Assembly: GCA_043228905.1 (NCBI GenBank) | Contig: JBHGNT010000017.1 | Coordinates: 5,704,001 to 5,768,000 of the forward strand | Origin: Azolla caroliniana | Lineage: Eukaryota > Plantae > Polypodiophyta | Direction: 5' to 3' | Length of the DNA: 64,000 bases | Shown here: piece after piece, positions 6,701 through 64,000 of the stretch | Layout of the letters: each line of letters starts with the position of its first letter | How positions within the stretch are numbered: position 1 is the first letter of the stretch | Position numbers and translations under genes: made by a program | Notes under the pieces: model-generated | The model's input: the letters and a program-made list of their open reading frames with translations, nothing else | Told to the model about the DNA's origin: nothing | Database searches by the model: none

Positions 6701-9700
6701 TTGGCCTCTTAAAAGATGTTACTATAGCTTTCTTTCTTTCTATGGTACTCATGAACTACCCTTTGAACATGTGATTAATTAACAAAGTTTTGTATATTGC
6801 AGGTGATGGAGATGCTTACTCATATTAATAAAAGAGTTAAAGGACAACCTTCCATCAAGCTTCCTCTATTGGATTTACTCAAGCTATATCAGAATGAGAC
6901 TTCAACACCAATGGTTAAGAGTTTCTCACTTGTTTACATGGAGATGTCTTTTGATCGCTCTATAAAGATGATTGAGGTCTTGTATATGTTTGCTGTTGGT
7001 TAATCTTCGTAATTTATGCAAACAATTAAACCTTTAGTAATCAGATTCTAGACTTTCTAACTTTGAAGCTTATGTAATTTTTGCCTATTGCATGGATGGA
7101 TATGTGATACATGATTATCTCAGGAAGATGGAATAGTTTTGGCACCGTCATTATTGGAAAACATATCTAAAGTTTCTGCACAGCATCAAGATATTCTTCT
7201 ACGAATGGCTGCAAAGGTATTTATGTTACATTTTATGTGGTAGAAAGTAGTCTAATTGAAATGCAAATAGATAAAGGATTCCAGATTTAAAATAAATAAA
7301 TAAAGACATCTCATAGATGAAGAGAGTATATTACCAGAAACTTTTCCACATATTTCTGAGATGTGCAAACTTTCTACATTTCAGTCATCTCCAAATCTCT
7401 TGTACATTCAAAGATGTGTAGTTTCCATAATTACCTCTAGATTGTTGCTAAAATATCCCACAAAATTTGGAACATTCTTTTTCATCGTGATGGAACAAAT
7501 GTGATGGTCATCAATTGAAATATCCGGAAAAGTATTATATCTTTCATTTCGACCTTAAATTTAGACTGTGACATTTACTGAATGTACCATAATTGGTGTT
7601 GAGCAGGAAATGGAGAAATATTCATCAGAACTCATGAATGAAACCAGTGCAGAGAAGTACAAGTTTGTAAACAATCCAGCTGACCGGGATGTTTTCTTAG
7701 ATTTTTGTTTACAGACAATCCTTTATCAGTATCAATCTGGTTTACCTGAAGGGTAATTTCCATATATTCTTGTTGAATCACTTCTTCAAAAAAACTGATT
7801 CAGGGTATAAGTTAGATTAAACATGTTACATGCAGGACTGGAAATGCTCCACCAGGCCTTTCCAGGCTTCAGGTAGCACGAATATCAGGAAAATCACCCC
7901 TCCAGGGCGAGTCACTTTTGAACCGAAAGGCAAGTCTCTTTTATTGTCCATCTAATAATTGAAATCACGTTTTTTGGAATACAATAGTTTTGAGTTGATA
8001 AGCATACTCTGTTTATTGAACAGATCAGCCTGCTAAATGTATCTACGGGGCTGAATGTACCCATTGATACTATTTATCCCTTGTTGATTGTAGCATCTGT
8101 AGACAGGTGGGTTTGTGTATTTTTACTGTGGAGATTCTAGTCATATTTGCTCTCCCTTAGTTTTGTCGGGTGACTGAATTACTTTGCCCTCACAGAGGTG
8201 CTGAAATAAAGTTGCACGGCCTATTAACGTGATTTTTGCAGTAACGATCGTGTATCAAAAAAAGCTGAAGAACTGTTGAAAAGGAAGGCTACTGGAGTAG
8301 ATCTTGAGAATTCAATGCTTGTAGGAAAGCTGTTTTCTATTTTTCGGGGTATGAGAACTTAATGCAGTCATAACTGTGGGTTTTGCTTGCAAAACTGAAC
8401 ATTCATTCTAATCAATGGAAGGATAGGCTTCAAATTTTCGTTTCTGGCTGCAATTTACCCTGCAGCATCTATTATAGTCGTGTGTTCTTACTCACATTAA
8501 TTGTATTTTCTGATTAACAGGTACACAAGGAAGTGAAACTGCTGCAGATGCAAAAGTTTCTCCAGCAAGTCCTGCTGTGAAAGTAAAATTAATGAATATC
8601 TTCACTCACTCCATTGCTGCTGCAAACTCTTTTCCAGCTACTCTTCATTGCATTTTTGATTGTATTTGTGGTAATGACCTGACAAGATTTCTCTTTTTCT
8701 TTCTTCTTCTTCTAATATAATTTAAGAAGTAAAAAAAGTTCGTGCAAGTGGCTGTATGAAGTACAGTTATCAGTGGCTTCAACAATATTAGATATCAATG
8801 GTTTTATAAAATCGTTTTATGTTCCATCACTTCATTTCTAAACATATTATGTTAAACAAGTTATCATTCTTAGTTAGTGCTGGCAGCAAAATCTCCTTAC
8901 GCTATTTCAGTGACTACAATGAATAAGTAACTTGTTGAGTGATAAAAGCCTAGACATTTACATCACTAAACTTATTTCTGTTCACCATCTGATTTAGAAG
9001 GAACCTAAATCATACACGTGAAAGGGCTCCCAAGGTTTGAAATTTGGTCTCATGAGCAATTCTGTAGTATTTTACAAACGAAAATTTGTATGTGTCTGAT
9101 ACATAACAAGCTCTTAGTTGTTTAGCAGTATCATGGTTGATTGTCGTAGATTGAAGTTAGATTCTCAGATCTATATCAGTCGTGTGATTAACAATGTCAA
9201 GGCTTGACTTGTCTTTTTTTGTCAGGAGATAATTCATTTTTAAAACTAAAGCAGGCTGGCATGGAGTTCGCGATTTGGGTATTCAAGCATGTAATGAATT
9301 TGACCAGATTATGAGTCACAAGTTTTGCCCAAAATTTCAATCTGGTATTGACATACTAATTTATATCCTGATAAAATGCTGCTAATTGTAGGCGAGGGAC
9401 GAACAGATGGAACCTATGGCTCCTATTATTCTATCTGGAATATTAAAGCTTCTTACTGATAATGCATCTTCTAGTGAAGCAGGTGTTTTCTCCTACCAAA
9501 TATAATCAATGATTGCTTATGCTTTTGCATCATATTGATTGGCTGAATTGACGTTTTAATCTATTCAGATACCTCTGTTAAACAATTGAAGATGTTTGCT
9601 TATCAAGCAATTGGCCAGCTGGGGCAACGAGCACCGCATCTTTTTAGGTAAACTGCAAACAGATCTGAGACCAGAATCTGCACTTCTATTTCATAATCCA

Positions 9701-12700
9701 TCCTCTGCTCACCAGAAAGGAAGATCCCTGCATATTCTTTTCTATGGCATGCTTTTTCAGGAGGTTGCATTTTCTTTTTATGCAAAGATGATTGCTTCCT
9801 GAGTCATGAAAAGATGTTTCATGATAATAGAAGCTCAAAGAAATATACAAAAATTAAATGACCAAAATGGAATATAATCAAAGGAATATTGCAGCATGAG
9901 CTTCCAAAGCATTTGGAAAGCTACAGGAAAATGTACAGGTTGGCTTGCATAGGCTGAAAGTAATGATCCTTTCGAAAGTTTCACCATCTGAAATACATAT
10001 CAATGTCGTTGTGTAATGATTCTTCTCATGCACCAGCTTCGATTAGATGTTAATATCTTTTCTCTTATTTGCCCTTAACACTCTTGATCCCACTGGTATG
10101 CTATTTCCATGTGAACTTTTTTATATTCTTTGCTGATATCTCATGTATAAATATTATTGAATTTGTTGGCCTTCTGGTGAAAGACTGCTTGATACCCTTT
10201 CTGTTACAATTTACATGCTCATTGTTTCCTTTTTTATATATCATTCACATTTATAATGGAGATTTATTTCTTGCGTCAACTGTAGTTGTATTATCCAAAC
10301 TTGTTTAAAAAATAATTTATGTTAACAGGGGTAGCACAGATGTTGTACTGCAACTATTTGAGGCATTGAAGATTGAGCCAGCATCATTGCGATTTACCAT
10401 ACAGGAAGCCATTACTTCTCTTGCACCTGCATATAAGGTATGCTTTCTATTATGCTGGCTAAAAGCACATATGCATAAAGCCAACGAGGAAACATTTGTC
10501 CTACGTCATAATATTTGAATAAAAATGGTGCATAGCCTTCATGAAGCTTTCCTGCAAAATGCTAGAAGCAATATAATAATGTACAAAACGTGGCTATTCT
10601 AGGCTTTTATGTAGTTGAAAAGGTGCGCACATTCACCATCCATTATGCAAAGGCATGTAACCTGAAATGCAAGTAGGTTTGTTAAATATATCCGTTTTGT
10701 ATGCAAGTATAATGGGGCTTCAGAAAGCTGATTACAAATAAATCCAATGTGCGTCCAAATGCTACTTTTCATCACACTTTTTTGGGTGACAAAAAACAGG
10801 TTGCAGTCTCTTTATTATATAGATGTACTGGAGATTGTAGACTTATTTTCAAGAAAATGATAAGAAATGAAGAGTGTTTATCACCAAAGAGTCAACACTA
10901 TTATAACTATATTCACACCTAACAGCTACTTAACTAGGTTCATACAATTCTAAGTATGTTCACACCCAACAGTTACTTAACTAGGTTCACACTATTATAA
11001 CAATGTTCACACCAAAACTTTCATAGGATACACATTTACGTGTAACAGGCCCACATATTCCATTCATGCATAGTGTGCCAAACTCTTGGTTAAAGAGGAA
11101 ATCGTGTCTTTCTTATTTCATAAAAAACACTACAGTGACAAACATAGTGCTCTTCAGAATCCACTCCCCGATGACACAATTGGCAAATTCTTTCTTCTAG
11201 AGGCATTCTTGCATATCTGCCTACCTCGATCTCTAACTGATGTGATGATGTTCGCAGCATCCCTATCACACTACACAACACATAGGACAGATGTATATCC
11301 ATATAAGATGGCCTGCTGATGGATCCATCCTCCGGCAGGTATAAAAAGTGTTCCACTTGGCAGCCATCTTCATACGAAGAGATTTTTTGGGGCTGATCCA
11401 TGTTCATCTGCTATCCAATGTGATAATATTAGTTGGGATCATTATGTTCTTTTCCGCTTTGGTCAAGTTTATTGGGGACAATCCATTCTATATTGGATTG
11501 AGGGTAGTGTGTTTATGCTTATGCCATTTGATTCAAACCATTGTTGTGTCTTAGCACAATGATTATCTTCGTGTTCACCAAGTTATTTTGATGAAATAAG
11601 TGCCAATCTTGCGAACCTTCCTTTATGCAGCTTCTAAAGCTGTTGGATTTATTGGTCACTGATCGCAATAACGCCTCAGTGATTATTAGGGCTCTCTTAT
11701 TTTCTCTGGAATTAAATCATGGGATGCCTGTGCTTTGCTCCTTACCATGTGGGCAATCATTGTGACTAAAGTTATCTGCAAATCTTTCTAGTTATTCACC
11801 ATGTTAAGACTTGGTTCCTAAGTTTCTGCCCCGTAGGGAAGAGTTGGTATGATGAGTGTATCAAATAGCCACAATTTAGTTCATGGCATTTGGAATTGTA
11901 TATGTTCACATTATGTTTCAAGAGCATGAAAGGCTGCATATCCACGAGAAAGTCGAGCACATGCAGCCTCCTGTAAGGAGAACTGAGGCCCTCTGAATGT
12001 TACTCCTAGGTATCTGTAGGATTTTATTATGCCTCGTTTTCCCTTCCCCAAGAAGAAATCTGGTTTTGATCTTGTTACCCAGGCTTGAGTGGTGTTGAAC
12101 ACTGTCACCTTAGTTTTATCTAAGCTTATTGACAAACCTTTGTCCATAAAAATGATTTAAAGATGTTTAGATGTCTATGTAATACCTCTAGAGAGTTGGA
12201 AATCAGTACAATATCATGAATGTAAATAATCAACCGTGTGATTATGTGCTGCGGAATTAGAATAGAAGTGTGTATGTATATGTATGAAGAAGGAATAGAC
12301 ACCAGATAGACAACAAAGCAGAAAATTGTATATTCACAAGAATGATAACCAACTGATTACAAAGGAGAGGAGAAGGTGCATGGTCACCTTCTCTCTACAT
12401 TCTGTTACTAAAACTACCTCTCGCCATGTGATTGGATGTGCCGGAGTCGACAAACCATACATTTTCCGAACCGGAGGTGCTGGTTGGACCAAAGGCCGAC
12501 ATAGAGTTCACTCTATGCCTCATCACGAACATTCCACCATAATCTTCATAGTCGGAGTTCGTGGCGTAATTGGTGAGTTGGGGACTTGTGGAAGCCCTCT
12601 CACGCTTCTTCTTTTGGCACTCTTCCTCATGGTGGTAGAATTTGCTGCAATATCCGCATTCGACAGGGTTGTTTTGTTGGCTTGTTCCGGCATGAAAGCT

Positions 12701-26240: not shown

Positions 26241-29200
26241 TATTGTCGTCTTTTAAGAAGCCAAAATGGTCTATAAAACCAAAGAGATTATATCTTACAA
26301 TGTTTTGTCGTCTTTGAGAACCACCAGAATAGATATAACTGAACATTGGGTACCAAAGTATCTACATATCCAAGAACTTAAAATTCGAAACTTAAAAAAA
26401 TCACCAACATGGGCCGCTCCTATATGGACAGATCTCTGAAGCACCTTCAGTGACAAGTGATAAAGACCTTTATTTGTTGGTGACAAGGGTGAAGTCTGTT
26501 GGGAATGACTAATGTTATAGCCAAACAGCTAGCCAACCCGAAGGGCTAATTATCCCAACGGCCAGATCTTGGCCTTTAAGAGGAACCTTCTCCTCATGTA
26601 AAAAGTGATCTCTGTGTTTTCTCTCTCCTGTTGTGACATATATGTATATTCTTGAGAATAAAGGTGGTTTTCTCATTTTTCAATATGGTATCAGAACCTA
26701 GATCCTCCCCTCTGCAAAACCCTGGATCCTCCCCTCTGCCAAACCCTAGATCCGCCCCTCTGCTGGTGTAACAGTGAACGGAACAGCACTATCTATCCTA
26801 GCATCCAAGAGACGAAAGGGAGGCTTCTCCTTCTTTGATGACAGTGCTATGTGACTTCAGGAAAGAAGTCAGAAGAAAGAAAGAAAGAAATATTAACGTA
26901 TTTTAAGAGGCCAAAATGGCCTATAAGACCAAATAAGAGATTACATCGTAAGTGTTGGCTCGTCTTTGAGAACAAATCAAAATAAAATAAATATTACACA
27001 GTAAATATAAAAGTAAATAAGATGAAAAGAAAAGAAACGAGGGAATCTGGTTTTTGGCACATGTGAGATTCCCAAGTTAGGTGTATTGTAGCTTTTGACT
27101 TCGAAAGATCTCTAGCATAGGTCGATCCAGAATGGAAATGTCTCCGAAGTGAGGGTTTAGGGTTTAGGGTTTAGATTGAGAAGATGGATGAGGTGTTGTC
27201 AAATTTGAACGAGGCTCAGGTGAAAACATAATGCAGGAGTCACTCCTGATCGTTAGGTGTTTCCTCATGATATTGCTCAGTTTATCGCTTATTCTAACAT
27301 ATCAGCTACACATAGAGCATTCATTGCATCATTAGACTCTGTCACTTTACCCAAGTGTTTAAGGTTGCTAAAGAAGATCCAAAGTGGAAAGCAGCTATGC
27401 AAGAAGAACAAAATTTGGGAGATTGTATCACTACCACCAGGAAAGAAGTCGGTTGGGTGCAAATGGGTATTTACAATAAAACAAACCCTAGACGGCAAAA
27501 TCGATTGTTACAAGGCACGATTAGTGGCTAAGGGATATAGTCAGACATATGGCATTGATTACGATGAGACTTTTGCACTTGTAGCGAAGATGAGTAGTAT
27601 TAGGACGCTTATTTCCTTAACAGTAAATAACGATTGGAAATTACATCAATTAGATGTAAAAAATGCATTCCTTCATGGAGAGTTGATGGAGGAAGTGTAC
27701 ATGGATATCACCCTAGGTTTTGGTACAATTCAAATAGTAGGCAAGGTGTGCAGACTAAGGAAGTCGCTTTATGGACTGAAGCAATCTCCTCGAGCCTGGT
27801 TCGACATGTTAAGAAGGGCTATGGTGGGTATGGGATACCGGCAGATCAATGTGGACCATACTGTGTTTCCGACAACAAAAGGAGAAATTTCCCAACTGAA
27901 GGTGCAACTAGATAAAGAGTTTGAGGTGAAGGATCTAAGGTTGCTACGATATTTTCTTGGAATTGAGGTAGCTGGTGGGGCAGGAGTTGTTCTATCTCAG
28001 CGAAAATATGTGTTAGATCTTCTCACAGAGACTGGAATGTTGGGTTTTAGGCTTGTAGCTTCTCCAATTGACCCAAAGATTAAGCTAACTGAACTTGCAG
28101 GAGAGAAAGTTGATCGTGAAAGTTATCAAAGATTGGTAGGTTGGCTTATTTATTTGACTCACAATCGTCTAGATATTTCATTTGCAGTAAGTGTGGTAAG
28201 TCGCTACATGCATGTTCCGAGGAAAGATCATTTGGATGCAATGTACCAAATTCTGAGATATCTCAAAGGTGCCCCAGGGAAGGGATTGATCTATAGAAAA
28301 CATGGTCATTTTAACATTGAGGGCTATTGTGATTCTGATTGGGCTAGTTGTGCTGATGATAAGAAATCCACATCAGGATACTGCATGTATGTTGGGGGCA
28401 ATCTGGTCTCTTAGAAGAGTATGAAACAGTCGGTAATAGCAAGGTCAACAGCAGAAGCAGAATATAGAGCTATTGCTGTAGGAGTTGCGGAGATGTTGTG
28501 GCTGAGAACTAAAGTGGAATCAAGAAAATCAGATGAAGCTGTGGTGTGACCATAAGTCAGCAATCAGCATTGCCAACAATCCGGTACAGCATGATAGGAC
28601 CAACCACATCGAAATCAACAGCTTATTTATCGAGGAGAAGCTTGATAGTGGAATATTAAAATTGAGTCATGTTTCTACTGAAGATCAAGTAGCAGATTGC
28701 CTTACGAAGGGACTTGGGCCAGTAAGGCTTTCTAGATTGTGTGACAAGATGGGCTTAGTGGATAACTTTCGCCCAATGGCTAGTTATCCCAACGGCCAGA
28801 TCTTCGACTTTTAGAGGAACCTTCTCCTCATGTAAAAAGTGATGTCTGTGTTTTCTCTCTCCTGTTGTGACATATATGTATGTTCTTGAGAATAAAGGTG
28901 TTTTTCTCATTTTCAATAAAGTCCATGGTCCAGTGGTTGTGGCCTACATGCATGGCACATTGCTATTGTTTGTATTGTAACCTCTTTGGTTAAGTCTCCA
29001 ATTGTGTAGTCCTTGATTCACTTGTAGCGTAAGTGGACATGGCTAAAGAAAGTTGTAATAATTCTCTGTTCATGAGCTGTTGTGGCTGTATTATTGTCCT
29101 TCAACAATTGTGTATTACTCGATTGTTTACTTATAGCATGAGTGATTGTTGTCTGTTGATGAGCTGTTGTGGCTGAATCAACCTTTGTTAGAGATCTTTT

Positions 29201-41790: not shown

Positions 41791-44700
41791 GGTCAAAAAC
41801 TTAAAGAGGAGACTAAGGTAGAACAAGTTGTGGAGATAGATCACTTACCATTTGACATGGAATCATGGAAGCCTCAAATGGCTCAAGCAAGGGTTAGGAT
41901 TTTTTGACAAGGTTGCTATTGAGGATTGTATGCAAACATTGGTGGCTTTATCGCAAAAGGTGTATGATTTAGGTGAACCGAAATCAACCAATGAGGTAGG
42001 CACAAGATCCATAAGTCCAAAGCAAAAAATTGCTGCAAAAACACCGTGATGGTTGACATTTCACTTGAGAACTTATTGGCAACTCCCCAAAAACTTCCAA
42101 ATCCACACCTGGAAGACTAGGGAAGACTAGGAGGCAGTTGCAAAAACACTGTGATGGTTGACATTTCACTTGTGTGGTGCAAGTTGGGCTAGGAGGCAGT
42201 TGCCAATATGTGAGACCGGGAAGGTTTGGTGTTTGAGTTGTGATGGCTTCACCTTGACTTCAAGGGAATCGAAAGTTGATTTCAGCAAAAATTGTGGTTG
42301 CATTTTGCCATTATCCCCACATGAGCATTTGTGGTTGCATTTGTATGGATTTAGTTTTCATTTCTAGGTTTTTTGTTGAGAATCAAGCTCAACTTGGTCT
42401 AGTGTGTGAACTCACCTTGAGAGTGAATAGACACTCCAGCGGTCAAGAGTCACCATTATGTCACCTCTTTGTATTCTAGCATTTAGTATGAGTCATAGAA
42501 TCATATTCTATGACACATAACTTATGAGCTTTCACATTCCCCATGCTCCATGAGTCTTGTAGTTAATGAAGAGAGAGGGTGACTATATAAAGCACCCTCC
42601 TCCCACCTTGTATTGTGTTGAGTCTTTCTCCTTTGTTAATACAATCTACCTTGCGTATACTCTGTGTCTTACTCCTTATCTCTCTCACTCTCTCTTACTC
42701 TCTCTCTATCTCATACACACACACACACATAGTTCACACCTATTCCGCTACACAAGAATCATACCCGATTCTTTACATGGTATCAGAGCGATTTGGTAGC
42801 TCGATCTAGCCCATTCGCCTCATCGTGATCGTGTGTTGTGCTCTACGCCGATGACCAAGAACCGGCTCATCGCTATCGTAGCTTTGCTACATAGCTCGCA
42901 TTCGAAGAGAGAAGAAGAAGAAGAAGAAGAAGAAGAATCGACATAATGAATACTCAAATGGGGAGCGCTCTCCCTACCAAGAAGTTGGATCGAAACAACT
43001 TCGCATCTTGGGAGTATAAGATGCACCAATACCTTGTCGGACCGACATGGGAGCACTAAGACCGACATGTCGCGTATCCGTCAAAGGAGAGCACTAAGAC
43101 CGACATGGGAGCAAGCCGCAAGCCGCGTGATGTATTGCTTGGCGACATGTGTTCACGATTACATGCTCGGCTACATTCGCGAAGCCAAGATGCCGAAGGA
43201 CGCATGGGAAAATCTACGAAAGATTTTCGCGGCGAACACAACCGCAAGAAGGCTTCAACTCCGCCAAGAGTTGAACAACATTCAACAAAGGGACATGTCC
43301 ATCATGACATACACCTTGAAGATCAAGGAGCTTTGCGACTTGCTCGGCTCGATTAGCGTAAGTATCGATGATAATGAGATGGTGCAAATATGCCTTGGTG
43401 GCCTCACACCACGGTTTGACGCGATGCGAACATCCGTTCTAGCAAGGGAGAAATCTCCCTCCTTCTTCGAGCTCCAATCAATGTTATTGGTCGAAGAAAA
43501 CCACGTGCGTACAAGGAGCAATGAGTCGGAAGGCCACATGCTCTACATGCACTCGAATGGAGGAAGAAGACGCGAACGAGCGAGAGGCCAATTCGGCCAA
43601 GGACAAGGCGGACGAGGTCCGACCTACGACAACAACTCCCAATTTCGGCCGCAAAACGGAAGCCAACAAGGAACCTTCGCAAGAAGGGGGAGTGGAACAC
43701 TCCGGCCCGAGCCGTCAAAACGCAACCGAATGTGGATATTGCGGAAAGCTCGGCCACCATGAAGAAGAGAGCCAAAAGAAGATGCGTGAATCGGCCTCCA
43801 CACGCCGACAACTCACGAATTACGCGCATAATTCCGACTACGAAGAGTATAGTGGAATGAATGGGCACAACTCTGACTACGAAGATTGTGGTGGAATTTA
43901 TGCACACAACTCCGACCGTGGCGGAATGTTCATGATGAAACATAGAGCAAACTCTATGTCGGCCTCTACCTCAACTAGTGCCCTCAATCCGGAGGACGTA
44001 TGGTCTTGTTGACTCCGGAGCCTCAAACCATATGACATCTCATAAAGAATGGTTTCTCGAACTACGAGAGCTGGAGCGACCCGGTTATGTCAAAACCGGA
44101 TATGACACTACGCACCCGATTCGGCACATCGGCAATGTTCTGTTCGGCGAAAGAGGTAAGCAAACATACATTAAAAATGTCTTGCATGTTCCCACCATCA
44201 CGAAGAATTTGGTCTCGGTCGACCAAATGGTTGAGCAAGGGATGCAACTACGATTCGACCAAGAAGGGTTCTTCATCGAAAAAGAGGGCTGAATCATCGC
44301 GCGCGGAAGAAGAGAGGGCCGGATGTTCATTCTCGATTCACACGAGATGAAATCCGCCATGTTTGCAAAAAGCACGAAAGCCGACTCCGACATAGAGCTA
44401 TGGCACAAGCGAATCGGCCACATCAATCTCAACAAACTCAAAGCAATGAAATCGAAAGGAATCGTCATCGGACTCCCGACATTCAAAGAGAAGGAGATTG
44501 AAGGTGTATGCGAAGCGTGCCAATTCGGCAAGCAACACCGACACCCATTCCCGAAAGAACGGAATGTGAGCAAAGGTCTACTCGACGTAATTCATTCCGA
44601 TGTATGGGGTCCGGCTCAAATAGCGACATTCGGCGGATGCCGATATTACGTGCTCTTCATCGACGACTTCTCTAGGCACATTTGGATCTACCCGATGTGG

Positions 44701-46100
44701 CAAAAGAGTGAAGTGTTCAGACACTTCCAAAAATTCAAGAATGAAGTCGAGAAAGCACGGGCCGACATGTACGGTGCCTTCGATCGGATGGTAGCAAGGA
44801 GTACTTCTCGGACGATTTCACGGCGTATCTCCAAAAGGAAGGAATTCGGCGAGAATTCACTTGCCGACACACTCTGCAACAAAACGGAGTAGCCGAGCGC
44901 AAAAATCGGCACATCCTCGAAGTGGCGCAGGCCATGATGAATGAGAAGCATATGCCCAAGTCATATTGGGTCGAAGCTGTTAATACGACCGTCTACCTAA
45001 TGAACCAGTGCACAACATCCGGAGTGCACAAGGTCACTCCGCACGAAAAATACTTCGGAAAGAAGCCGGATTTATCGCACACCCGGATATTCGGCGCAAT
45101 CGCGTACGTGCACATCCCCGACAAGAAGCGTCAAAAGCTTGACCCGAAGTCGGAGAAATGTATCCTCGTAGGATATTCACTGGAGCAAAAGGGGTACAAG
45201 TGCTACAACCCCTCAACTCGAAAATCTCGAATAAGCCGTCTTTTTTGACGAGTCCGCATCCTAGTATACACCAGAGACAACTCCGACTCCGCTCGACCCG
45301 GAATCCGCCGAACAAGAGATAGAGGATGAAGATCGCGTTACACGCTTGTTCGAAGAAAGTCCGATCACAACCCAACTGAGCGGACCACAAGAGCCTTTGA
45401 GCGATCAAAGCACATCACGACTTAGCCCGAAGATGGACAAAGGCAAGGCGAAAATGTCGGAATATGAAGACGATCGCTTCGACGACGATGAGTTGACTCA
45501 CTCACTCAACAATGAGTTCGGTGGCTTCGATGTACCAATTGGAGCTAAGAAAGCCCTCATCTCTGCAAATGAAAAGCTCTGTCGCTCCACCCGTGAAAAA
45601 AATCTGGTCAGCTGATTCGGCTACAACGACTACATGGCATATCACTATGCCTTTATGATGAAGGTGGCAACAGTACGCGAGCTGGAAACACTCTCTGAAG
45701 CAGCCAAGGATCTGCGATGGATCGAAGCCATGAATGAGGAGATGCAGGCACTACGCAAGAATGAGACATGGGATCTCGTTCCCACCTCACCACACAAAAA
45801 GGCGATCGGATGTAGATGGATCTACAAAGTGAAGTACAACGCCGACGGCCCAGGGACTTCACTATCAAAACTTGTATGATAGCACGTGAGTTCATCAAAA
45901 GGGGTTTTAATTAATTAGTGAGATACAGAATATATATACATAAGGGTATTAATAAAGATTTGAAAATATTTTTACATAAGGGTATTATCAATTATGCTGA
46001 AAAAAAAATTACGTAAGCCCATGAAATATTAGATATTTCAATGAGATAGTAAAGAATATATTATGCAAAGAATACTCAAATTTGAAGTGGCATACATACA

Positions 46101-46132
<32 letters not shown>

Positions 46133-46897
46133 CATGCATGCATCCATATATACCTACATTCAAACATTACATCCATGAATATGTATATACATACATACAT
46201 TACACCCATTTATACATGCATGCTGACTAAACATAAATATATATTACCATATGTAAATATGTACATACACATACATACATGCATTACATACTACATACAT
46301 ATTAAAATTGGCCATATATATTGACATACATATATAGATAATACATACATAAAAATTACATATTACATTTATACATACACTTCCTTACAAACATATTTTA
46401 TATATTACCATATGTAAATATGTACATACACATACATACATGCATTACATACTACATACATATTAAAATTGGCCATATATATTGACATACATATATAGAT
46501 AATACATACATAAAAATTACATATTACATTTATACATACACTTCCTTACAAACATATTTTATATATTACCATATGTAAATATGTACATACACATACATAC
46601 ATGCATTACATACTACATACATATTAAAATTGGCCATATATATTGACATACATATATAGATAATACATACATACATAAAAATTACATATTACATTTATAC
46701 ATACACTTCCTTACAAACATATTTTATATATTACATATGTACAAATATATATTACCATATGTAAATATGTACATACACATACATGCATGCATTACATACT
46801 ACATACATATTAGAATTGGCCATATATATTGACATACATACATAAAAATTACATATTACATTTATACACACACTTCCTTACAAACATATTTTATATA

Positions 46898-47082
46898 GGG
46901 AAAAGTACCAAGATACCCCTGGAAGTTTGTCTATTTACCAGAATGCCCCTGGAAGTTTCAAATTTACCAAACTACCCCTAAAGTGTATTTTTTTGGACAT
47001 AGGGGTAGTTTGGTAAATTTGAAACTTCCAGGGGCATTCTGGTAAATAGACAAACTTCCAGGGGTATCCTAGTACTTTTCCC
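46898..47082. mobile_element. Mutator-type MITE (185-bp hairpin) with 9-bp TSD
   Basis: ~83-bp TIRs beginning GGGAAAAGTAC with 2 mismatches. TSD TTTTATATA at 46889-46897 and 47083-47091. Confidence 0.9.
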
Positions 47083-47118
47083 TTTTATATATTACATATT
47101 ACACACATTTATTATTAT

Positions 47119-47571
47119 TATTTTTTCCAAAAAAACACTACTTCGCATTAGTTAGCAAACAAAATTACATCATAGAACACCCAAAGTTCTTCTCACCAGC
47201 CCTCACTCTGGCCTTCCCACCAAAGTGGACATAGTCCCCACCTCATTTTCAACAAACGTATCCAAACAACTCCAATAACCTAATAATTTGTACCATATCT
47301 ATACAGATTTACAGCACCTAGACGTTGTTGGAAACCGGAAACAGCCATCGGGGTGCTTGGTAGTTCGTTCCATTGAGGCCAGTACTGATGAGGATCTGCC
47401 CACCATAGGAGAATTACCCCATTTCAGCAAGAACTTTGATCGAGATCTTTCAGCTGCATCAGATTCCCCCTTGATTGAGTCGTATCGTCCCCGCAGCCAA
47501 GATACCAACTCAAACCAGATATTTAATAATACCTCACCGCTAGGGATCTTTTGTTGTTGAAAAACAAATTA
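47119..47571 (-). mobile_element. 5'-truncated L1-like LINE 3' end
   Basis: ORF2-C-terminus-like frame (IWFELVSWLRGRYDSIKGESD..RSKFLLKW), A-rich tail, flanked by a 19-bp duplication TACACACATTTATTATTAT (47100-47118 / 47572-47590). Confidence 0.6.
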
Positions 47572-47647
47572 TACACACATTTATTATTATACACACAATT
47601 ATATACAAATGCAAATATACAAACCAAACACAAAAAAAATAAAATTC

Positions 47648-47698
<51 letters not shown>

Positions 47699-48555
47699 CA
47701 CATACATACACATACACACATTCCATACATACAATACAATACAATATGTACATACATACACACACAAACATAACACACATCACACATGCATATCATATAC
47801 ATGCATATATACCTACATCCATGAATATGTATATACATACATTACACTCATTTATACATACATATTAACTAAACATAAATATATGTACAAATATATATTA
47901 CCATATGTAAATATGTACATAATACATACAATAAAATTACATATTACATACATATATACATACACAAATGCATATATACATACAAAACACACAAAAATAA
48001 ATTACATATTATATATATGTATACACATACACATACATATTAACACCTAAAGGCTAAGATTACATACTATATATATACAAATCTTCATACTTACAAACAA
48101 GTTACATATATTACATATATATACACGTGCACGCACATAAATAAATTAGATATTACATAGCATATATTACACAATATTCAAATTTACACATACATAAATT
48201 ACATATATACATATATAGATACATACATAGATATACATATTACATATGTACATACATATTCCACATATCACCATATATATATGTATAGATTATACTGGAC
48301 CATACAAACCACAATACTTATATATATACATACTACACACACACACACACACACACATTAGATATGTATATGTATACTTACACATAAATAAATTAGATAT
48401 TACATAGCACATAATCCATACCTATTACACAATATACAAATTTACACATGCATAAATTACATATATACATACATAGATATATTACATATGTACATACATA
48501 TTCTACATATCACCATATGTATAGATCATACTAGACCATACAAACCACAATACTT

Positions 48556-48586
<31 letters not shown>

Positions 48587-50023
48587 TTAGATATATGTAT
48601 ACTTACACATACATTGGATATATACATGCATATTACGTACATATTACAAACATACATCCATATACGAGCCATATACATATGTACTAAACATGAAAATATC
48701 CCAAAAATATAGATACACAAATACATTACATATATACACGTACATACATTCATACATTTACATATATATGACCACATACACACACATACATACATACATT
48801 AGATATATATGCACATATTACAAACATATTCATACTCATTAAATCATGTATATCTACATATACATATATGCATACACATACATACATTACATATGTACAT
48901 ACATATTCCACATATCACCATATATATATGTACATATGCCTACAATGTTAAAAGTTTTACAAACATACATCCATACACATATATACATACATTACATGCA
49001 TGCATACACATAAATATGTTACATACACATACATACATACATTTCATCACAGACTACAATACATACATGTATACTTACACATACATAAATATTATGAACA
49101 CACTCATGTATGCATAGTACACTATTACACATACAAACATACATGCATTGCATATTACATATATATACATATGTACATGCATACATGTACATTCATGTGT
49201 GTACATACATACATTGCATATGCATATATTACAATCACATTCATGTACATTGAATCATGTACATTGTCATATATATGCATACACGTATGTACATTCATAC
49301 ATGGACATACCTATATTCATTCATATATTGCTACAGTCTACATATACATAAATTAGATATATACATAAATATTACAATCACACATCCATACACATTGAAT
49401 CATGTACATTGTCATATGGATATATGCATACACATACATACATTAGATATGGATATATGCATACACATATGTACATTCGTATATGGACATACATATCTTC
49501 ATTTATACATTGCTACACATACATACACATATATACATTAGATATCTACATAGATATTATGCATATATTACAATCACACATCAATACACATTGAATCATG
49601 TACATTTGCATATGCATATATGCATACACATACATACATGACATATGCATATATGCATACACATATATACATTCGTACATGGACATACATATAGTCTTTT
49701 ATACATTGCTACATGTACATACACATACATACATACATGCATACATACATATATTAGATATACACACACATACGTATATATATATATACACCTACATATA
49801 GTCTTCTATACATACACATACATTACATATGGATATATGCAAACACATATGTACATTCGTACATGGACATACATATATTCATTTATACATTGCTACATAT
49901 ACATACACATATATATACATAGATATTATGCACATATTACAATCACACATCTATACACATTGAATCATGTACATTTGCATATGCATATATGCATACACAT
50001 ACATACATATTACAAACAAATAT

Positions 50024-50056
<33 letters not shown>

Positions 50057-51152
50057 TATACATACATTACATATTACATATGTACATTCATTCATTCATG
50101 TTTATTCATTGAAGCATACATATTTTATGCATACATTACATATACATATATATATATATATATTCATTCATTCATGCATGCATGCATACATTATGTGCAC
50201 ATACATACATAACATACATTCATACTAAACATACATTCAAACATTCATGTTTTTTTATTTAGATATTTGCCGCCTCCTCCTTTGCTCCCTCCTCTTCTCT
50301 GCTCATTTCTGCGATTGCTTCTTCTCCCCTTCTTTTTGTCCTCGTTTTGCCGCTGCCTCTGTTCTCATTTTGCCGCCACCGCTCGCCTTGTCGTGCCGCT
50401 TTTGCTCACCATTATTCTCTGTTGGGGTTGCCACAACTATTCTACAAATATTTTACAGGTACACATAAGTACAAACATAAACCAACACATAAATTCTTAG
50501 CCACACACACACGTACATACATACATACATACATACATACATACATAAACACACACACACACACACGGGCCATACATACAATAAACGAAATTAATACATT
50601 ACAGTACAATATGTACATATATACACACATACCTATGTACACATACTTACACATTTACACATATAACACATACATACAATACAATATGTACACACATACA
50701 TACATACACATGGAATACAAACAATACATACATAAACACACACACATGTGTAGAATATACATACACACATGTACACACATACCTATATACACATATATAC
50801 ACTTACATACATACACATTTACACATATAACACATACATACAATACAATATGTGCACACACACATACATAAACACACACACACACACACACGTGTAGAAT
50901 ATACATACACATATGGACACATATATATGTTGTATGGAACATACATACACACACACAAACATAACACACAACACACACATGAAATACATACAATAAATGC
51001 AATACAATATGTACATAATACACACATACCTATACACACATGCATACAATCCATACAATACCTATATACACATATAATGCACACATACATACATAAACCA
51101 ACACATAAATTCTTAGCCACACACACACACGTACATACATACATACATACAT

Positions 51153-51222
<70 letters not shown>

Positions 51223-51559
51223 GCCATACATACAATAAACAAAATTAATACATTACAATACAATATGTACATATATACACACATACCTATATACACATAC
51301 ATACACATTTACACATATAACACATACATACAATACAATATGCACACACATACATACATACACATGGAATACAAACAATACATACATAAACACACACACA
51401 CACACACGTGTAGAATATACATACACACATGTACACACATATATGTTGTATGGAACATACATACACACATACCTATATACACATATATACACTTACATAC
51501 ATACACATTTACACATATAACACATACATACAATACAATATGTGCACACATACATACAT

Positions 51560-51600
<41 letters not shown>

Positions 51601-52296
51601 TAGAATATACATACACATATGGACACATATATATGTTGTATGGAACATACATACACACACACACAAACATAACACACAACACACATGAAATACATACAAT
51701 ACAAAACATAACACACAACACACACATGAAATATACATGAAACACATATATGTTATATGGAACATACATACACACATGGACACACATATATGTTGTATGG
51801 AACATACATACACACATACCTATATACACTTACATACATACACATTTACACATATAACACATACATACAATACAATATGTGCACACATACATACATAAAC
51901 ACACACGCACACACGCACACACGCACACACGCACACACGTGTAGAATATACATACACATATGGGCACATATATATGTTGTATGGAACATGTATACACACA
52001 CACAAACATAACACACAACACACACATGAAATACATACAATACAAAACATAACACACAACACACACATGAAATACACATGAAATACATATATGTTATATG
52101 GAACATACATACACACATGCCTATATACACATATATACACTTACATACATACACATTTACACATATAACACATACATACAATACAATATGTGCACACATA
52201 CATACATAAACACACACACACACACACGTGTAGAATATAGATACACATATGGACACATATATATGTTGTATGGAACATACATACACACACACAAAC

Positions 52297-53016
52297 ATAT
52301 TGTTGAGGATGAGATTGTGATTAAGCGGAATGTTAAGTGGGATAGCTCAAATGAATTACTTTTGGGTTTTTGTGGGTTGAAGTCATCCAATCATCAATGT
52401 GTCTCATCATGTATGATAAAGGTGGGTGACTCTAATGCTGATTATGAAACCATTGTTAGCTCCTTTAAAGACTATGTGGTTGGACACTATGCTAGGGTGT
52501 TAATTGCGAATCCTCTTCACCCTAAACTTCCACGATTAGTATTGGTTGTACAATGTACATGTAATTGCTTTGATGCAGATTTTGTAAAATGCCAATGGAA
52601 TGAAGTGGAAACTTTATGGGAAAAACACCTCTCCACAAGTATTGGGCCAATTGTTGGACATGCATTTGATGGAGATAGTAGGAGAAGAAAGATTATGCTT
52701 CAAGTTTACTTAACCCCAAGCATATGCTTAAGATATAAATTGCCTTGGGATGGTTGGATCTTCACAGGTCAAATGCATAATGATATGGTAAGTTGTCTTC
52801 ATGATCAAGATTTCATCCATAATGGAAAGAAACTTGTGAATGCACTAGATAATCCCTCAAGACAATTAGTAATTGGGGATGTATGGATCACATTGAATCA
52901 TGTGCCTTTGGTATATAATAACTTCTCTATTGATGCACATGGCTTAAGGGAATGTGATATTACGAGAGAAGATAGACAAAATTGGGCTGGAGCTCAAAGA
53001 ATTGCAAGTAGAAATG
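52297..53016 (+). pseudogene. P-element-like DDE transposase core fragment (~240 aa)
   Basis: Motifs in P-transposase order: EDEIVIKRNVKWD..LLGF (first Asp), GHAFDGDSRRR (second Asp), DQDFIHNGKKLVN (DxxHxxK), DRQNWAGAQRI (resembles D/K-MKV..A.Q). N-terminus and the final Glu segment are not visible. Confidence 0.65.
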
Positions 53017-54699
53017 TAGAAACCAAATATAAACCTACGGTATTCCAAATATATTTTCTGATTTCTTTACTTCCATGTATATTAAGATTTCTTGCTTTTG
53101 TTGTTACATTTTATGATATAGGTCCAATGTTGAAGATGGAAACGACATGAAATTTACAGCCTAAAATGAACTTCTTAGGGTTTTCTTTTTATATACTCAG
53201 TCTTTATAAGGGTAACCTTTATTGCAATAAGTTTTTTAAGTAGATATTGCAATAACAAAATGATTTATTTTATTTCATTTTGATTTGGGTAAGAGTATGT
53301 GAATAGATGAGGAGGTCTTACATTTCAAATGGAAATATGAAGTAGGTTGCCATTTGTTTGATCAATGTGTTTGAGAAAAAATAATATTATGTCTTTATAT
53401 GAGTCTATATCCATGAAACCAAACATAATGTTAATTTGTTAGTAATTTCATTATTGATATGCATTTTGGATTGTTCCATATGTGCTCTTTGAGATGTATG
53501 TGTTAAGTTCAAGATTGTTTTATTGTAAATTACATTGTTTTTTATCACTCAATGTTCTTCATACGTCTCAATAAACTAAAAACAAAAACTTATATGTGGC
53601 TTGTATATGTTATAATTGTAGTGTTTTTGGGTAATGTTTCCTAATTGTGTGTACATTACTTTGTACTTTACACATTGTGTTTTCAATCTATGTGGCACTT
53701 AATGAAGCATTTCTAGGAATTTGCATATGATGTTTAATGTCGATTCATAATTTTGCGAGTCATCAATTGTAAAGATGGTCATTGATCCCTTCTAGGATTG
53801 CAACCTATGTGTGCATGTATATTTTATATGTAAGGGTATTTAAAATGGGTAGTTATCAAAAAATATATTGGTAATAAGGGGTATTTTTATTAATCTTTTT
53901 TCTACAGAAGGGTTACTAAAATAGTAAAAACCATACGTATAAGGGGTTTATAAATGATGTCATGAACGCACGTGATACAATCTTCTTATGTATAGTGGAG
54001 TCCCCGGGGCCGACGGTTCCGTCAACCGCTACAAAGCGCGACTCGTAGTGAAAGGCCCAAACGCACGGAGTTGACTACGAGGAGACCTTTGCCCCGGTGG
54101 CAAAGATGACAACGGTACGGATCATAATTGCGCTTGCCGCGGCGAAAGGGTGGCACCTCCATCAAATGGACGTCAAGAACGCCTTTCTACAAGGCGAATT
54201 AGAAGAGGAGGTGTACATGATACAACCACCCGGCTTCAACTCGAGCACCCATCCGAAAGCTGTCTGCCGACTCAAGAAGCCACTCTACGGCCTCCAGCAA
54301 GCACCGTGTGCTTGGCATTCGAAGATAACGCAATATCTTCATCAAATCGGCTTCTGTATGTCAAAATCGGACAACTCCCTCTACATACGAAGCGATTCCG
54401 CAACTCCGATCGTCATCATCTTATATGTGGATGACCTAGTCATTGGAGGTGAGCATCTCGTCGAAATCAATAAGGTCAAATCCCTCCTTTCCATTTGGCT
54501 CGGAACCCGGTGTTCCACGCGCGGACAAAGCACATCGAAGTGCACTATCACTTCATCCGTGAGCGTGTTCTAGCTGGCGATGTCGACCTACAACACATTA
54601 GCACCAATCTTCAAACGACCGACATCTTCACTAAAGCCTTAGGAGCCGACAAGCTATGGCAATTCATGACCGATCCCTGACATGCCAAGCTTGAGGGTT

Positions 54700-55531
54700 T
54701 GTTGGGAGACAGGTCCCTCCGGATGGAAAGGGAGAAGAACAGTGCTGATGAACAAGCTCGGCCGAGGCTGATAGGCCGAGGCCGAAACCGGAAGAGAAGT
54801 ACCCGGCTACGGAGAGCCGGATGGTGCAGGCCCGGTGTGAACCGGATGAGGAGTACCCGGCTACGGAGAGCCGGATGGTGCAGGCCCGGTGTGAACCGGA
54901 TGAGGAGTACCCGGCTACGGAGAGCCAGATGGTGCAGGTCCGGTGTGAACCGGATGAGGAGTACCCGGCTACGGAGAGCCGGATGGTGCAGAACCGGTGA
55001 GAACCGGATGAGGAGCACCCGACTACGGAGAGCCGGATGACGCAGACCCGGTGCGAACCGGAGGAAGAGACATATTCGTAAATATGTTTCTGAGAGCCCA
55101 TCGAGGCTACATTAGTAAATAGCCGAAAAGTCATATTAGTATAAATATGACTTAGGGCAAACTTTTAGCGGGGTGTTGTTGTTGTCATTTTCTTGTTGGT
55201 GCAAGAAGAGAGAGCGTGTAACAGTGTACAGAGAGAGAGAGAGAGAAAGAGGTCGTTGCCTCTGTTGTAACCGCCGCCTGTGGCGAAGATCTGTGAGCAC
55301 GAGGTCGGTGCCTCAGTGAACTCATTGTTGTACATTCCATCATAGTGATAGTTTGCAGCCTGTGGGCTGCCGTGGTTTTTCCCCCTAGTTTGGGGTTTTC
55401 CACGTAAACCTCCTGTGTACCTCTTCTCTCCTTTTGTGTCGCGTGTTTTTTTTTGTTTCCTGTTTTCTGTGTAAGAAAAGAATCTCGGTCGTGGCCGAGC
55501 GTTGGACATAAGGAGCGTAGAGTTCCCGTCA
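54700..55531 (+). mobile_element. Probable solo LTR of a second Copia family, containing a 54-bp tandem array (54787-55060)
   Basis: TGTTGG...GTCA ends. GTGGTTTTT..GGGTTTTCCACGTAAA motif typical of Copia LTRs. Imperfect AGGG(T/G) duplication; it splits the host's CTTGAGGGGGAGTAC. Confidence 0.55.
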
Positions 55532-56580
55532 AGGGGGAGTACTAAAGACGCTACGCAATAAACCATGGATTCCACAACCGTGCAACGAAGCCACGAAGAG
55601 CCGATCTACCGCGCAAAGGCACGAAGAAAGACGCAAGCTGAAGCACAGACTTCGAAACTACGCACAACGCAAGCTGGAGCACGGATTCCGCAACTCCGCA
55701 TAAATGCGAGTCGACGCAAACTCCAGAATGCAAGTTGAAGCGGATTTCGGATACTGTTTGAAACCAACCTGACTTGAGCTTGAGGGGGCGTGTTGAAAAT
55801 CAAGGTCAACTTGGTCTAGTGTGTGAACTCACCTTGAGAGTGAATAGACACTCCAACGGTCAAGAGTCACCATTATGTCACCTCTTTGTATTCTAGCATT
55901 TAGTATGAGTCATAGAATCATATTCTATGACACATAACTTATGAGCTTTCATATTCCCCATGCTCCATGAGTCTTGTAGTTAATGAAGAGAGAGGGTGAC
56001 TATATAAAGCACCCTCCTCCCACCTTGTATTGTGTTGAGTCTTTCTCCTTTGTTAATACAATCTACCTTGCGTATACTCTGTGTCTTACTCCTTGTCTCT
56101 CTCACACACACACACACTCTCTCTATCTCATACACACACACAGTTCACACCTATTCCGCTACACAAGAATCATACCCGATTCTTTACATTTTTATTCTTG
56201 GATTTTGAACATTTTTTGTCTTCAAAATCAACACTACATAGCTTGTTATCTTAGAAACCTTTTGTGGCTGGAAATTTGTGTAACTTGAAGTTTTAAGTAT
56301 GTTCAAAACACATTTTTGGCTTTTTCGTAATTGGAATTTTTGGTGGCGGAACATTCAACCGGTGTTGCTTGTCGAGGTTGCTATTGTAGACCAGCACCCA
56401 ATCTCCCTCGATCTTTCGGGGCCGCAGTCGAGGTGTTTTGTCAAATCAGACCTTGTTCTTCATCCAGGTTGCCTTCATCCGTTCTTTTGCTCTCTGTAGA
56501 TCCTCGAGTCGTCTTTCGAGATGCCATATTCGTGCAATTAATAATTCCTCCATGCTCATCTCGTCCTCCCATGGAACCGT

Positions 56581-62600: not shown

Positions 62601-64000
62601 AATACTAACTGTTAATTGGGCTAATAACATATTGCTAACTTGCTTAGGGGGAATGGAACCACTAATGGGTTGCACAGATCTAGGGTTGTCCAACCAAACG
62701 GCTCCTATTTTGGATGGACTTAGTCGTTTAACTCTTCTTCTAACTGACTAAGGACATCAAATTTGTTCGATAGATTTGAGCTATTAGTACTATTAGGACT
62801 ATAAGATATTCCTATTGAAATAGACTCGGGTTTAGTACAATTAGAACTAGCAACTATTTGGTTTACCTGTCTTCTTGGCCTATGGGGACAGTTCACTACA
62901 ATATGCCCTGGTCCACCGAAATAAAGACATAGTTGATTTGCTCTACGTCGCCACTTTTCTTCTTCCGATAATGGTCCGTGATGATGTGTAGTGTCAATTT
63001 CCATTTGAGTTGGAGTATTCACTGGAGGCGCATTATATGACTCCCTTGGAAAAGGTTTTGCTACCACTAAGGCGTAGGTGGGCTCTAATCTTGCCCTTGG
63101 CATCTGGAACTGACGTTCCGAACGTCGTTCAAAAAGACGGTTGTTGCATCTCACTACGCGACTAATTGCTTTTGTCAATGACTTTGGTTCTTCGGGGAAG
63201 GTCAAGAGTAAATCCTTGACATCGTTACGTAGACCATAACGAAATTGCTCCATTAATGCTTGGTCATCCCAAGGGATATCGGAGGCGAGTAGGCGGAAAT
63301 CTGCAGAGTATGCAGAGGCTAGAGGATCACCTTGACGTAATCGTTGGATTTTGTTGATTGTTGTCCTTATCCTGTCAGTATCTCCAAAACAGGCTTTAAA
63401 CTCACTTAAAAACTCTTCAAAATTGTTTAGTAAAGAAGATTCCTTTTCTAACAACGGAACGAACCATGTCAAAGTTGAGCCACTTAACAACGTGCCTACT
63501 AAACCCTCTCGTGATGCATCGGTGGGATATCGGGAAGGATGCATTTGAATGACTAATCGTACCTGATTAAGGAATCCTCTAAACTGCGATCGCGTTCCAT
63601 CGAATTTCATGGGAAGGCCGATCTTGGGTTCTTTATGAATCCCTTGCGTACTAGGTCCTTGTTGTTGAATCACTACTATGGTTGCTTCGAGTTGTTGCAC
63701 GTGTAATGCTAGTTCCACATGTTGTTGTTGCGTCTGTTGCTTCTCTAAGGAGATTTGTTAAAGCTCCCCAAATAGTCATTGATGAGGAATAAGAGATTAG
63801 TATGAAGGGAGGGAGAAATAAGGAGATAAAGGAAGAGAAGGAAGGAGAATAATCGGTTCAAACTGTCAAGAATAGTACTAAGACAGAGAAGGAATTAGTA
63901 CTAAAAGATGAGGATTAGTACTAAGGGAGATGTAGAACTCTTGAGAGAAGTAAAGAGTGAGTAAGGGAGAGAGAGAGAGAGAGAGAGAATGATAATAACA
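59603..64000 (-). mobile_element. Tcn1/chromovirus-like Ty3/Gypsy retrotransposon, degenerate; 5' LTR runs off the window
   Basis: gag 62720-63718 (PMKFDGTRSQFRGFLNQ, zinc knuckle CLYxGGPGHIVVNC), protease LLDSGA, RT YLDD, RNaseH DASDFA, integrase GLLEPL..WQSIALDF..SDHGPQF. LTR 3' end (..TGACA) at 63864. Confidence 0.9.

Follow-up and report, generated by a model that had tools for sequence, protein, structure and literature searches.

A probable divergent P-superfamily transposon inserted in a young Copia element of the fern Azolla caroliniana

Introduction

The Drosophila P element is the type of the P superfamily. Its transposase is represented by the structures 6P5A and 6PE2, and the canonical element has ends beginning with CATG, 31-bp terminal inverted repeats (TIRs), subterminal repeats and an 8-bp target-site duplication (TSD). 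P-like elements have been described from insects, vertebrates, Ciona, Trichomonas and a few fungi (PMC3698922; PMC5751038). Their transposases carry the signature D ... D ... [C/D](2)H ... E (Yuan and Wessler 2011, as cited in PMC8230255), in which the second catalytic aspartate (D2) and the glutamate are 228 residues apart in Drosophila P and 239 in human THAP9 (PMC8230255). In a 2025 survey of 1,007 green-lineage genomes, P was among the 17 superfamilies screened with Pfam models (E below 1e-5), and the recently active autonomous elements came from seven superfamilies only, P not among them (PMC12973397). Here we analysed a stretch of 64,000 nucleotides of Azolla caroliniana (GenBank assembly GCA_043228905.1, contig JBHGNT010000017.1, positions 5,704,001 to 5,768,000 of the forward strand), hereafter called the window and numbered from its first letter. 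It contains an 8,160-bp element with a fragment of a transposase gene. Very probably this element is a cut-and-paste transposon of a divergent P-superfamily clade, in a copy that has lost internal sequence and is no longer autonomous.

The family to which this element belongs resembles Drosophila P in its 8-bp TSD, short TIRs and subterminal repeats, and in the order D, D, D(2)H, E of its conserved residues, with a D2-E distance of about 241. According to a predicted structure, it would also have the same region adjacent to the helix-turn-helix (HTH), the same RNase H core and the same insertion-domain fold. However, sequence identity to Drosophila P is only about 13-15%. The ends begin with CCC or CTC, the TIRs measure 14-17 bp, and helix alpha1 is separated from strand beta4 by about 45 additional residues, among them conserved Cys and His. 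Searches for a THAP domain found none, and a C..CxxC motif occupies the N-terminus instead. THAP9 and the animal P-like transposases (PF21787, PF21788, PF21789 and PF12017) are neighbours of the family in the ESM Atlas, with template modelling (TM) scores of 0.63-0.73, but most family members do not reach the cut-offs of their Pfam models and the THAP finger was not detected here. Elements of the hAT superfamily (Ac, Tam3 and Hermes), which are common in plants, share the 8-bp TSD, the short TIRs and a DDE (Asp-Asp-Glu) core with an all-alpha insertion, but they give a much weaker fold match and their dimerisation domain was found in none of 18 full-length family members. Transib and RAG1 form the second-best fold class, far below P, and have a 5-bp TSD, hairpin-forming chemistry and other termini.

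Results

Element boundaries and empty site

The element occupies positions 45849-54008 of the window and is bounded by 17-bp inverted ends, which agree at 15 of 17 bases, and by two exact copies of the 8-bp TSD GCCGACGG (Table 1). A degenerate 17-mer derived from the TIR matched two sites in the 64 kb, namely both ends of the element, against 0.02 sites expected from shuffled sequences. The insertion splits the reverse transcriptase (RT) domain of a Copia retrotransposon, so that the left flank corresponds to positions 1-28 of Pfam RVT_2 and the right flank to positions 59-188. When the element and one TSD copy are taken out, the Copia codons read through the junction (...YNADG followed by SVNRYKARLVVKG). 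Furthermore, four public runs yielded contigs that follow the left flank through position 45848 and pass from there directly into TTCCGTCAACCGCTACAAAGCGC, as found in the window from 54017 on. These contigs are paralogous, uninterrupted Copia copies with a single GCCGACGG; they act as an empty site and thereby fix both the element boundaries and the 8-bp duplication. The exact 8-bp TSD, the 17-bp TIRs and the precise interruption of a Copia RT had all been proposed in a preliminary description of this DNA, and each of them was borne out here. The left end of the element had high contig coverage in four runs, which points to a multi-copy family.

Table 1 Features of the window and of three related elements on other contigs (positions of the latter refer to their own contigs).
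Feature	Position	Strand	Remarks
Host Copia long terminal repeat (LTR) retrotransposon	42374-56189	+	gag, pre-integrase and RVT_2; TTTTT at both flanks
LTRs of host Copia (~400 bp)	42374-42777 and 55791-56189
Primer binding site of host Copia			TGGTATCAGAGC
Left TSD copy, GCCGACGG	45841-45848	.	Exact match to right copy; one copy in uninterrupted Copia paralogues
Left TIR, CCCAGGGACTTCACTAT	45849-45865	+	C(C/T)(C/T)NGGG....CAC in common with ends of L005, L008 and L003
Left subterminal cluster, three copies of AAGGG(G)T[AT]N	45899-45986	+	Probable transposase binding sites
Interior without transposase homology	46091-52297	.	CATA-type microsatellite, tandem arrays, two short GC-richer patches, nested foldback
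Transposase gene fragment, ~240 codons	52298-53017	+	Inside a chance-extended open reading frame (ORF), 52098-53150
Right subterminal cluster, four copies of AAGGG(G)T[AT]N	53832-53949	+	Same strand as left cluster
Right TIR, reverse complement CCCGGGGACTCCACTAT	53992-54008	-	Pairs with left TIR
Right TSD copy, GCCGACGG	54009-54016	.	Exact match to left copy; empty-site contigs
L005, 6,758 bp	4378-11135		Intact 823-aa ORF; ends CCCGGGGGGGGCAC, perfect 14-bp TIR; TSD ACTGGGGG, perfect
L008 (and copies in other samples), 6,870 bp			Broken copy; ends CTTGGGGGGGACACT / CTCGGGGGAGACACT; TSD CGCTTAGT, perfect
L003 (Adiantum), 16.1 kb			Family gene P0005; ends CTCGGGGGGTGCAC; TSD 7/8

The window copy is a deleted derivative

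The element is AT-rich, with 20-35% GC compared with about 50% in the surrounding Copia. The repeat AAGGG(G)T[AT]N occurs seven times in the two terminal 200-bp segments (three copies at the left end and four at the right), always on one strand, compared with a background of 0.12 per kb per strand. These subterminal repeats are probably binding sites of the transposase.

A tblastn search with all family proteins against the window returned a single coding piece, at 52299-53033. The public contig L002 is 96.7% identical over exactly 52298-53017, and its coding sequence goes on at both sides of the match, unlike that of the window. The window copy is therefore an internally deleted, non-autonomous derivative. 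The fragment keeps the two putative catalytic aspartates, D1 (the first, in EDE) and D2 (in FDGD), and the D(2)H motif, while the N-terminal DNA-binding/HTH part and the C-terminal half with the putative catalytic E are missing. The preliminary description had read these motifs, in this order, in a peptide of about 240 residues. They are indeed present (EDE, FDGD, DxxH and DRQNWAGAQR) on conserved columns of the family alignment, but the coordinates given for the peptide were out of frame; the right frame is that of the ORF at 52098-53150, with the homologous part at 52298-53033. The 23 substitutions between the window and L002 comprise 11 synonymous and 12 non-synonymous changes; small as these numbers are, such a ratio hints at some past purifying selection.

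Approximately 6 kb of the element interior consists of satellite-like arrays and long CATA-type microsatellites. The tandem arrays lie at 46238-46897, 49369-50008 and 51413-52119, and have periods of 161, 196 and 341 bp. The two GC-richer patches (47200-47560 and 50250-50440, one of them CT-rich) had no detected homology to the transposase family and may be remnants of other sequences. At 46897-47083 there is a nested foldback of 187 bp, with 84-nt arms that are 98% complementary, a 19-nt loop and TTTATAT on both sides; it looks like a miniature inverted-repeat transposable element.

Family proteins and their conserved residues

A search with the fragment found 51 relatives with E-values down to 6e-93, none of which (0/51) carried a precomputed Pfam domain. 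The named sources among them were the fern Adiantum nelumboides and the liverwort Riccia sorocarpa. A profile search without length limit extended the family to 2,194 cluster representatives, 329 of them below 1e-30, and many of these proteins have 800-1100 aa. Several residues are near-invariant in the family: the D of AEDET on a strand, SDGD just past a strand, DxxH immediately behind the following strand, and an E that lies in a helix about 241 residues past D2. They follow the D, D, [C/D](2)H, E signature on the expected secondary-structure elements. The N-terminus of the family has a C...CxxC motif that is unlike THAP.

Pfam matches were very rare among these proteins, and the few that were found all led, weakly, to P-type models. 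P0114 matched PF12017 (P transposase-like HTH) at 23.7 bits, against a cut-off of 23 bits, directly upstream of the core, and two gene models of the sea spider Nymphon exceeded the cut-off of PF21787 (TNP-like RNase H, N-terminal part). PF21787 also matched at the first catalytic strand in the Adiantum protein P0052 (E 0.0022, 18.7 bits, under the 24.6-bit cut-off) and in L002 (E 0.1, below the cut-off). In terms of language-model features, the window fragment itself fell with PF21787 clusters (0.95). None of 18 full-length members carried the Pfam domains for hAT dimerisation (PF05699), BED or DUF659, nor that of KDZ. In the profile check of P against hAT suggested by the preliminary description, the fragment had no Pfam match, and its relatives gave weak PF21787 and PF12017 matches and no hAT match.

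Predicted fold

We obtained an AlphaFold2 model for residues 120-700 of the relative P0054 from an alignment of 100 sequences (mean predicted local distance difference test, pLDDT, 93.6; predicted TM score, pTM, 0.87). The fold ranking refers to this model and not to the window fragment, whose own model, built from 26 sequences, was too poor (pLDDT 55.5). In a Foldseek search against the PDB, the Drosophila P element transposase came first (6pe2 and 6p5a; E 4e-13, TM 0.66-0.68), and the next class was RAG1 (E 5e-5, TM about 0.3). VIA-align gave the same order, with Z 29 for the P element transposase (409-418 of 442-456 residues aligned), 13.5 for Transib, 11.5 for RAG1 and 8.8 for the hAT transposase of Hermes. 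The alignment to 6P5A spans residues 128-569 and takes in the large domain that is inserted after strand beta5 and before helix alpha4; this part of the model would correspond to the GTP-binding domain of the Drosophila protein, and the Atlas neighbours bear PF21788. Among the ten neighbours listed by the ESM Atlas, those with a Pfam family were all TNP-like or THAP9, and the full-length matches had TM scores of 0.61-0.73 (0.63 for vertebrate THAP9); the closest cluster listed was from Basidiomycota and had no Pfam family. Among the structures compared, the best match of the family is therefore the P element transposase rather than hAT, MULE or KDZ, as the preliminary description had expected. 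Its further label "THAP9-like" suits the catalytic core, but not the THAP domain, which was undetected in the family.

In the RNase H core, residues ~308-376 of P0054 include an additional stretch that follows helix alpha1 and precedes strand beta4, with conserved Cys and His (GFCG..H.C and TCN.F). This stretch may represent a metal-binding insert not shared with the Drosophila P transposase.

Transposase, ends and TSD at other loci

As the window copy alone is insufficient to link the ends to the protein, we examined contigs encoding relatives. Three other loci (L005, L008 and L003; Table 1) carry a family protein between related ends with 8-bp TSDs, which indicates that the protein family, the type of terminus and the 8-bp TSD travel together. 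For L005, with its perfect TIR and TSD, none of 30 shuffles (0/30) gave any match. The pattern C(C/T)(C/T)NGGG....CAC is common to the termini of the window element and all three loci. L005 further resembles the window element in the layout of a subterminal repeat, ACAGCC[CA]C, with three copies per end on one strand, and the left end of L008 contains window-like motifs of the AGGGTAT type. TSDs of the P superfamily are 7-9 bp long, typically 8; those of the window element, L005 and L008 are exact 8-bp duplications, and that of L003 agrees at 7/8 positions. Accordingly, two expectations of the preliminary description held: 8-bp TSDs recur at other copies, and the peptide is tied to such termini and is not an unrelated capture. 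Its reading of a distinct P-like family, with ends unlike those of canonical P, is likewise supported.

A generic scan of L008 for TIRs and TSDs gave one AT-rich candidate pair, which we took for chance, and its real ends were located through the terminal motif and the TSD. At L004, the locus of Adiantum P0052, there was a left-end-like motif only, and no partner end within the 23 kb examined.

Phylogeny and host range

In a tree of the core region, which is unrooted and has most of its rows without a taxon, the window fragment falls in a clade of 24 sequences (support 97) together with the three Adiantum proteins. The animal-named sequences of Nymphon and Amphiura belong with P0054 to another clade. 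This topology is consistent with a plant lineage within the family, but does not discriminate between vertical descent and horizontal transfer. Since sister clades include animal sequences, the family is not restricted to plants. The L005 protein lies in the animal-named clade, yet its termini resemble the plant ones; judging from these sequences, the terminal sequence seems to be conserved across very distant hosts.

Host Copia and age of the insertion

The LTRs of the host Copia show five differences over about 380 non-microsatellite positions (~1.3%). The P-like element must have arrived after the Copia had inserted. Given that it lies inside so young a Copia, the insertion itself is young and the family has been recently active in this plant, in agreement with the recent transposition claimed in the preliminary description. 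We estimate its age at about one to a few million years or less, based on commonly used plant rates, which may not be those of this plant.

The RT of the host Copia has a frameshift at 54040-54075, just downstream of the insertion site, and a 54-bp unit is repeated five times in tandem at 54732-55069. Retrotransposons dominate the window, and none of its long ORFs was recognised as a host gene. The other ORFs include a second Copia RT (27257-28414), whose best named relatives are all from land plants at 60-70% identity, and a Ty3-type gag (62720-63718).

Discussion

The anatomy of the window copy, its empty site, the fold of the family and the association of protein, ends and TSD together lead us to a divergent P-superfamily transposon, and a simple series of events could account for the locus. 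Full-length relatives of about 800-1100 aa would have the architecture of Drosophila P, namely a coiled-coil/HTH region, a DDE core of the RNase H-like type and a large inserted domain. Such a transposase would bind the short G-rich repeats clustered under both ends and cut at the C(C/T)(C/T)NGGG....CAC termini; the ends would then be joined to a target cut with an 8-bp stagger, whose repair would yield the 8-bp duplication. The target in this case was the RT gene of a young Copia. Because about 240 codons are all that the window copy retains of the gene, next to both ends and the subterminal repeats, the transposase must come from another copy, and the element was presumably mobilised in trans.

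Several observations weigh against this assignment. No autonomous copy of this genome was seen among the loci examined, and the closest more complete copy, L002, is frameshifted and lies on a short contig without ends. The window fragment had no match in Pfam, and most full-length members reached no Pfam P-element model at curated thresholds. A THAP domain (PF05485) was found in none of 18 full-length members at E-values up to 0.1-1. Sequence searches of PDB chains with the fragment, a 26-sequence profile and a 100-sequence profile did not find the P element transposase (weak matches to BCCIP and to designed repeats were taken as noise). The D1-D2 spacing is about 120 residues, compared with 70-73 in P and THAP9, a difference that is due to the extra segment with conserved Cys and His. 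The superfamily assignment rests mainly on the predicted structure of P0054, together with weak matches to sequence models, and this relative is 41% identical to the window fragment and sits in a clade of animal-named sequences. Finally, the direct comparison covered superfamilies with solved structures or Pfam models, which leaves Novosib, Kolobok and MULE outside it.

Given these points, the most serious competing view is that the family belongs to some other superfamily with 8-bp TSDs but without a solved structure, either Novosib or an unnamed one, and looks like P merely through related folds. In Novosib, originally reported from a green alga, the TSDs are likewise 8 bp long. This length agrees with the observations, and the general failure of the Pfam P models, the undetected THAP domain and termini unlike those of canonical P could all be understood in the same way. 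We nevertheless regard this view as unlikely, since the match to P extends over nearly the whole transposase chain, including the insertion domain, and its Z score is more than twice that of the next superfamily. Moreover, the Pfam-bearing Atlas neighbours listed point only to TNP-like proteins and THAP9, and the matches to PF21787 and PF12017, at and below threshold, fall at homologous positions. For Novosib itself, an RNase H domain could not be confirmed (PMC5751038).

The divergent P family also has to be weighed against a different origin of the window copy, as a Pack-type element of another superfamily that captured a fragment of a P-like gene, so that the TIRs and the peptide would be unrelated. 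The gene piece is merely 720 bp long and lies amid unrelated repeats, as such a capture would predict, but the same protein family stands between related ends with 8-bp TSDs at three independent loci, one with an intact ORF of 823 aa, and we consider the capture very improbable. An assignment to hAT, the usual 8-bp-TSD superfamily of plants, has next to nothing left to recommend it, for although the TSD length, a CAGGG in the left end like that of some hAT termini and a [C/D](2)H motif that also occurs in hAT would suit it, Hermes scored far below P in the fold comparison, the hAT dimerisation, BED and DUF659 domains were absent from all 18 full-length members searched, and the empty site sets the ends at CCC and not at CAGGG.

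Beyond the single locus, we lean towards the view that the family is a deep clade within the P superfamily that had so far escaped recognition, as judged by comparison with the literature, Repbase and Dfam entries lying outside that comparison. The clade would be characterised by the lack of THAP, by conserved C(C/T)(C/T)NGGG....CAC termini and by an extra Cys/His insert in the RNase H core, and would be present in land plants (this genome, Adiantum and Riccia), in animals and probably in fungi. It would have been transposing in Azolla within roughly the last few million years, making P a genuine and recently active superfamily of land plants that was missed by Pfam surveys. The family may simply be too divergent for standard domain searches, which may be the reason why plant surveys report no P elements; it fails a Pfam-type screen as used in the survey of 1,007 genomes (PMC12973397). 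Plant transposon pipelines use a fixed set of TIR superfamilies, and since the family escapes Pfam models, its copies would stay unclassified or be mislabelled as hAT by their 8-bp TSD. Recognising the family would extend the host range of P-like elements to land plants, and its profile and terminal consensus could serve in the annotation of genomes of ferns and bryophytes. A THAP-less relative of P would also become available for comparing how these enzymes find their ends.

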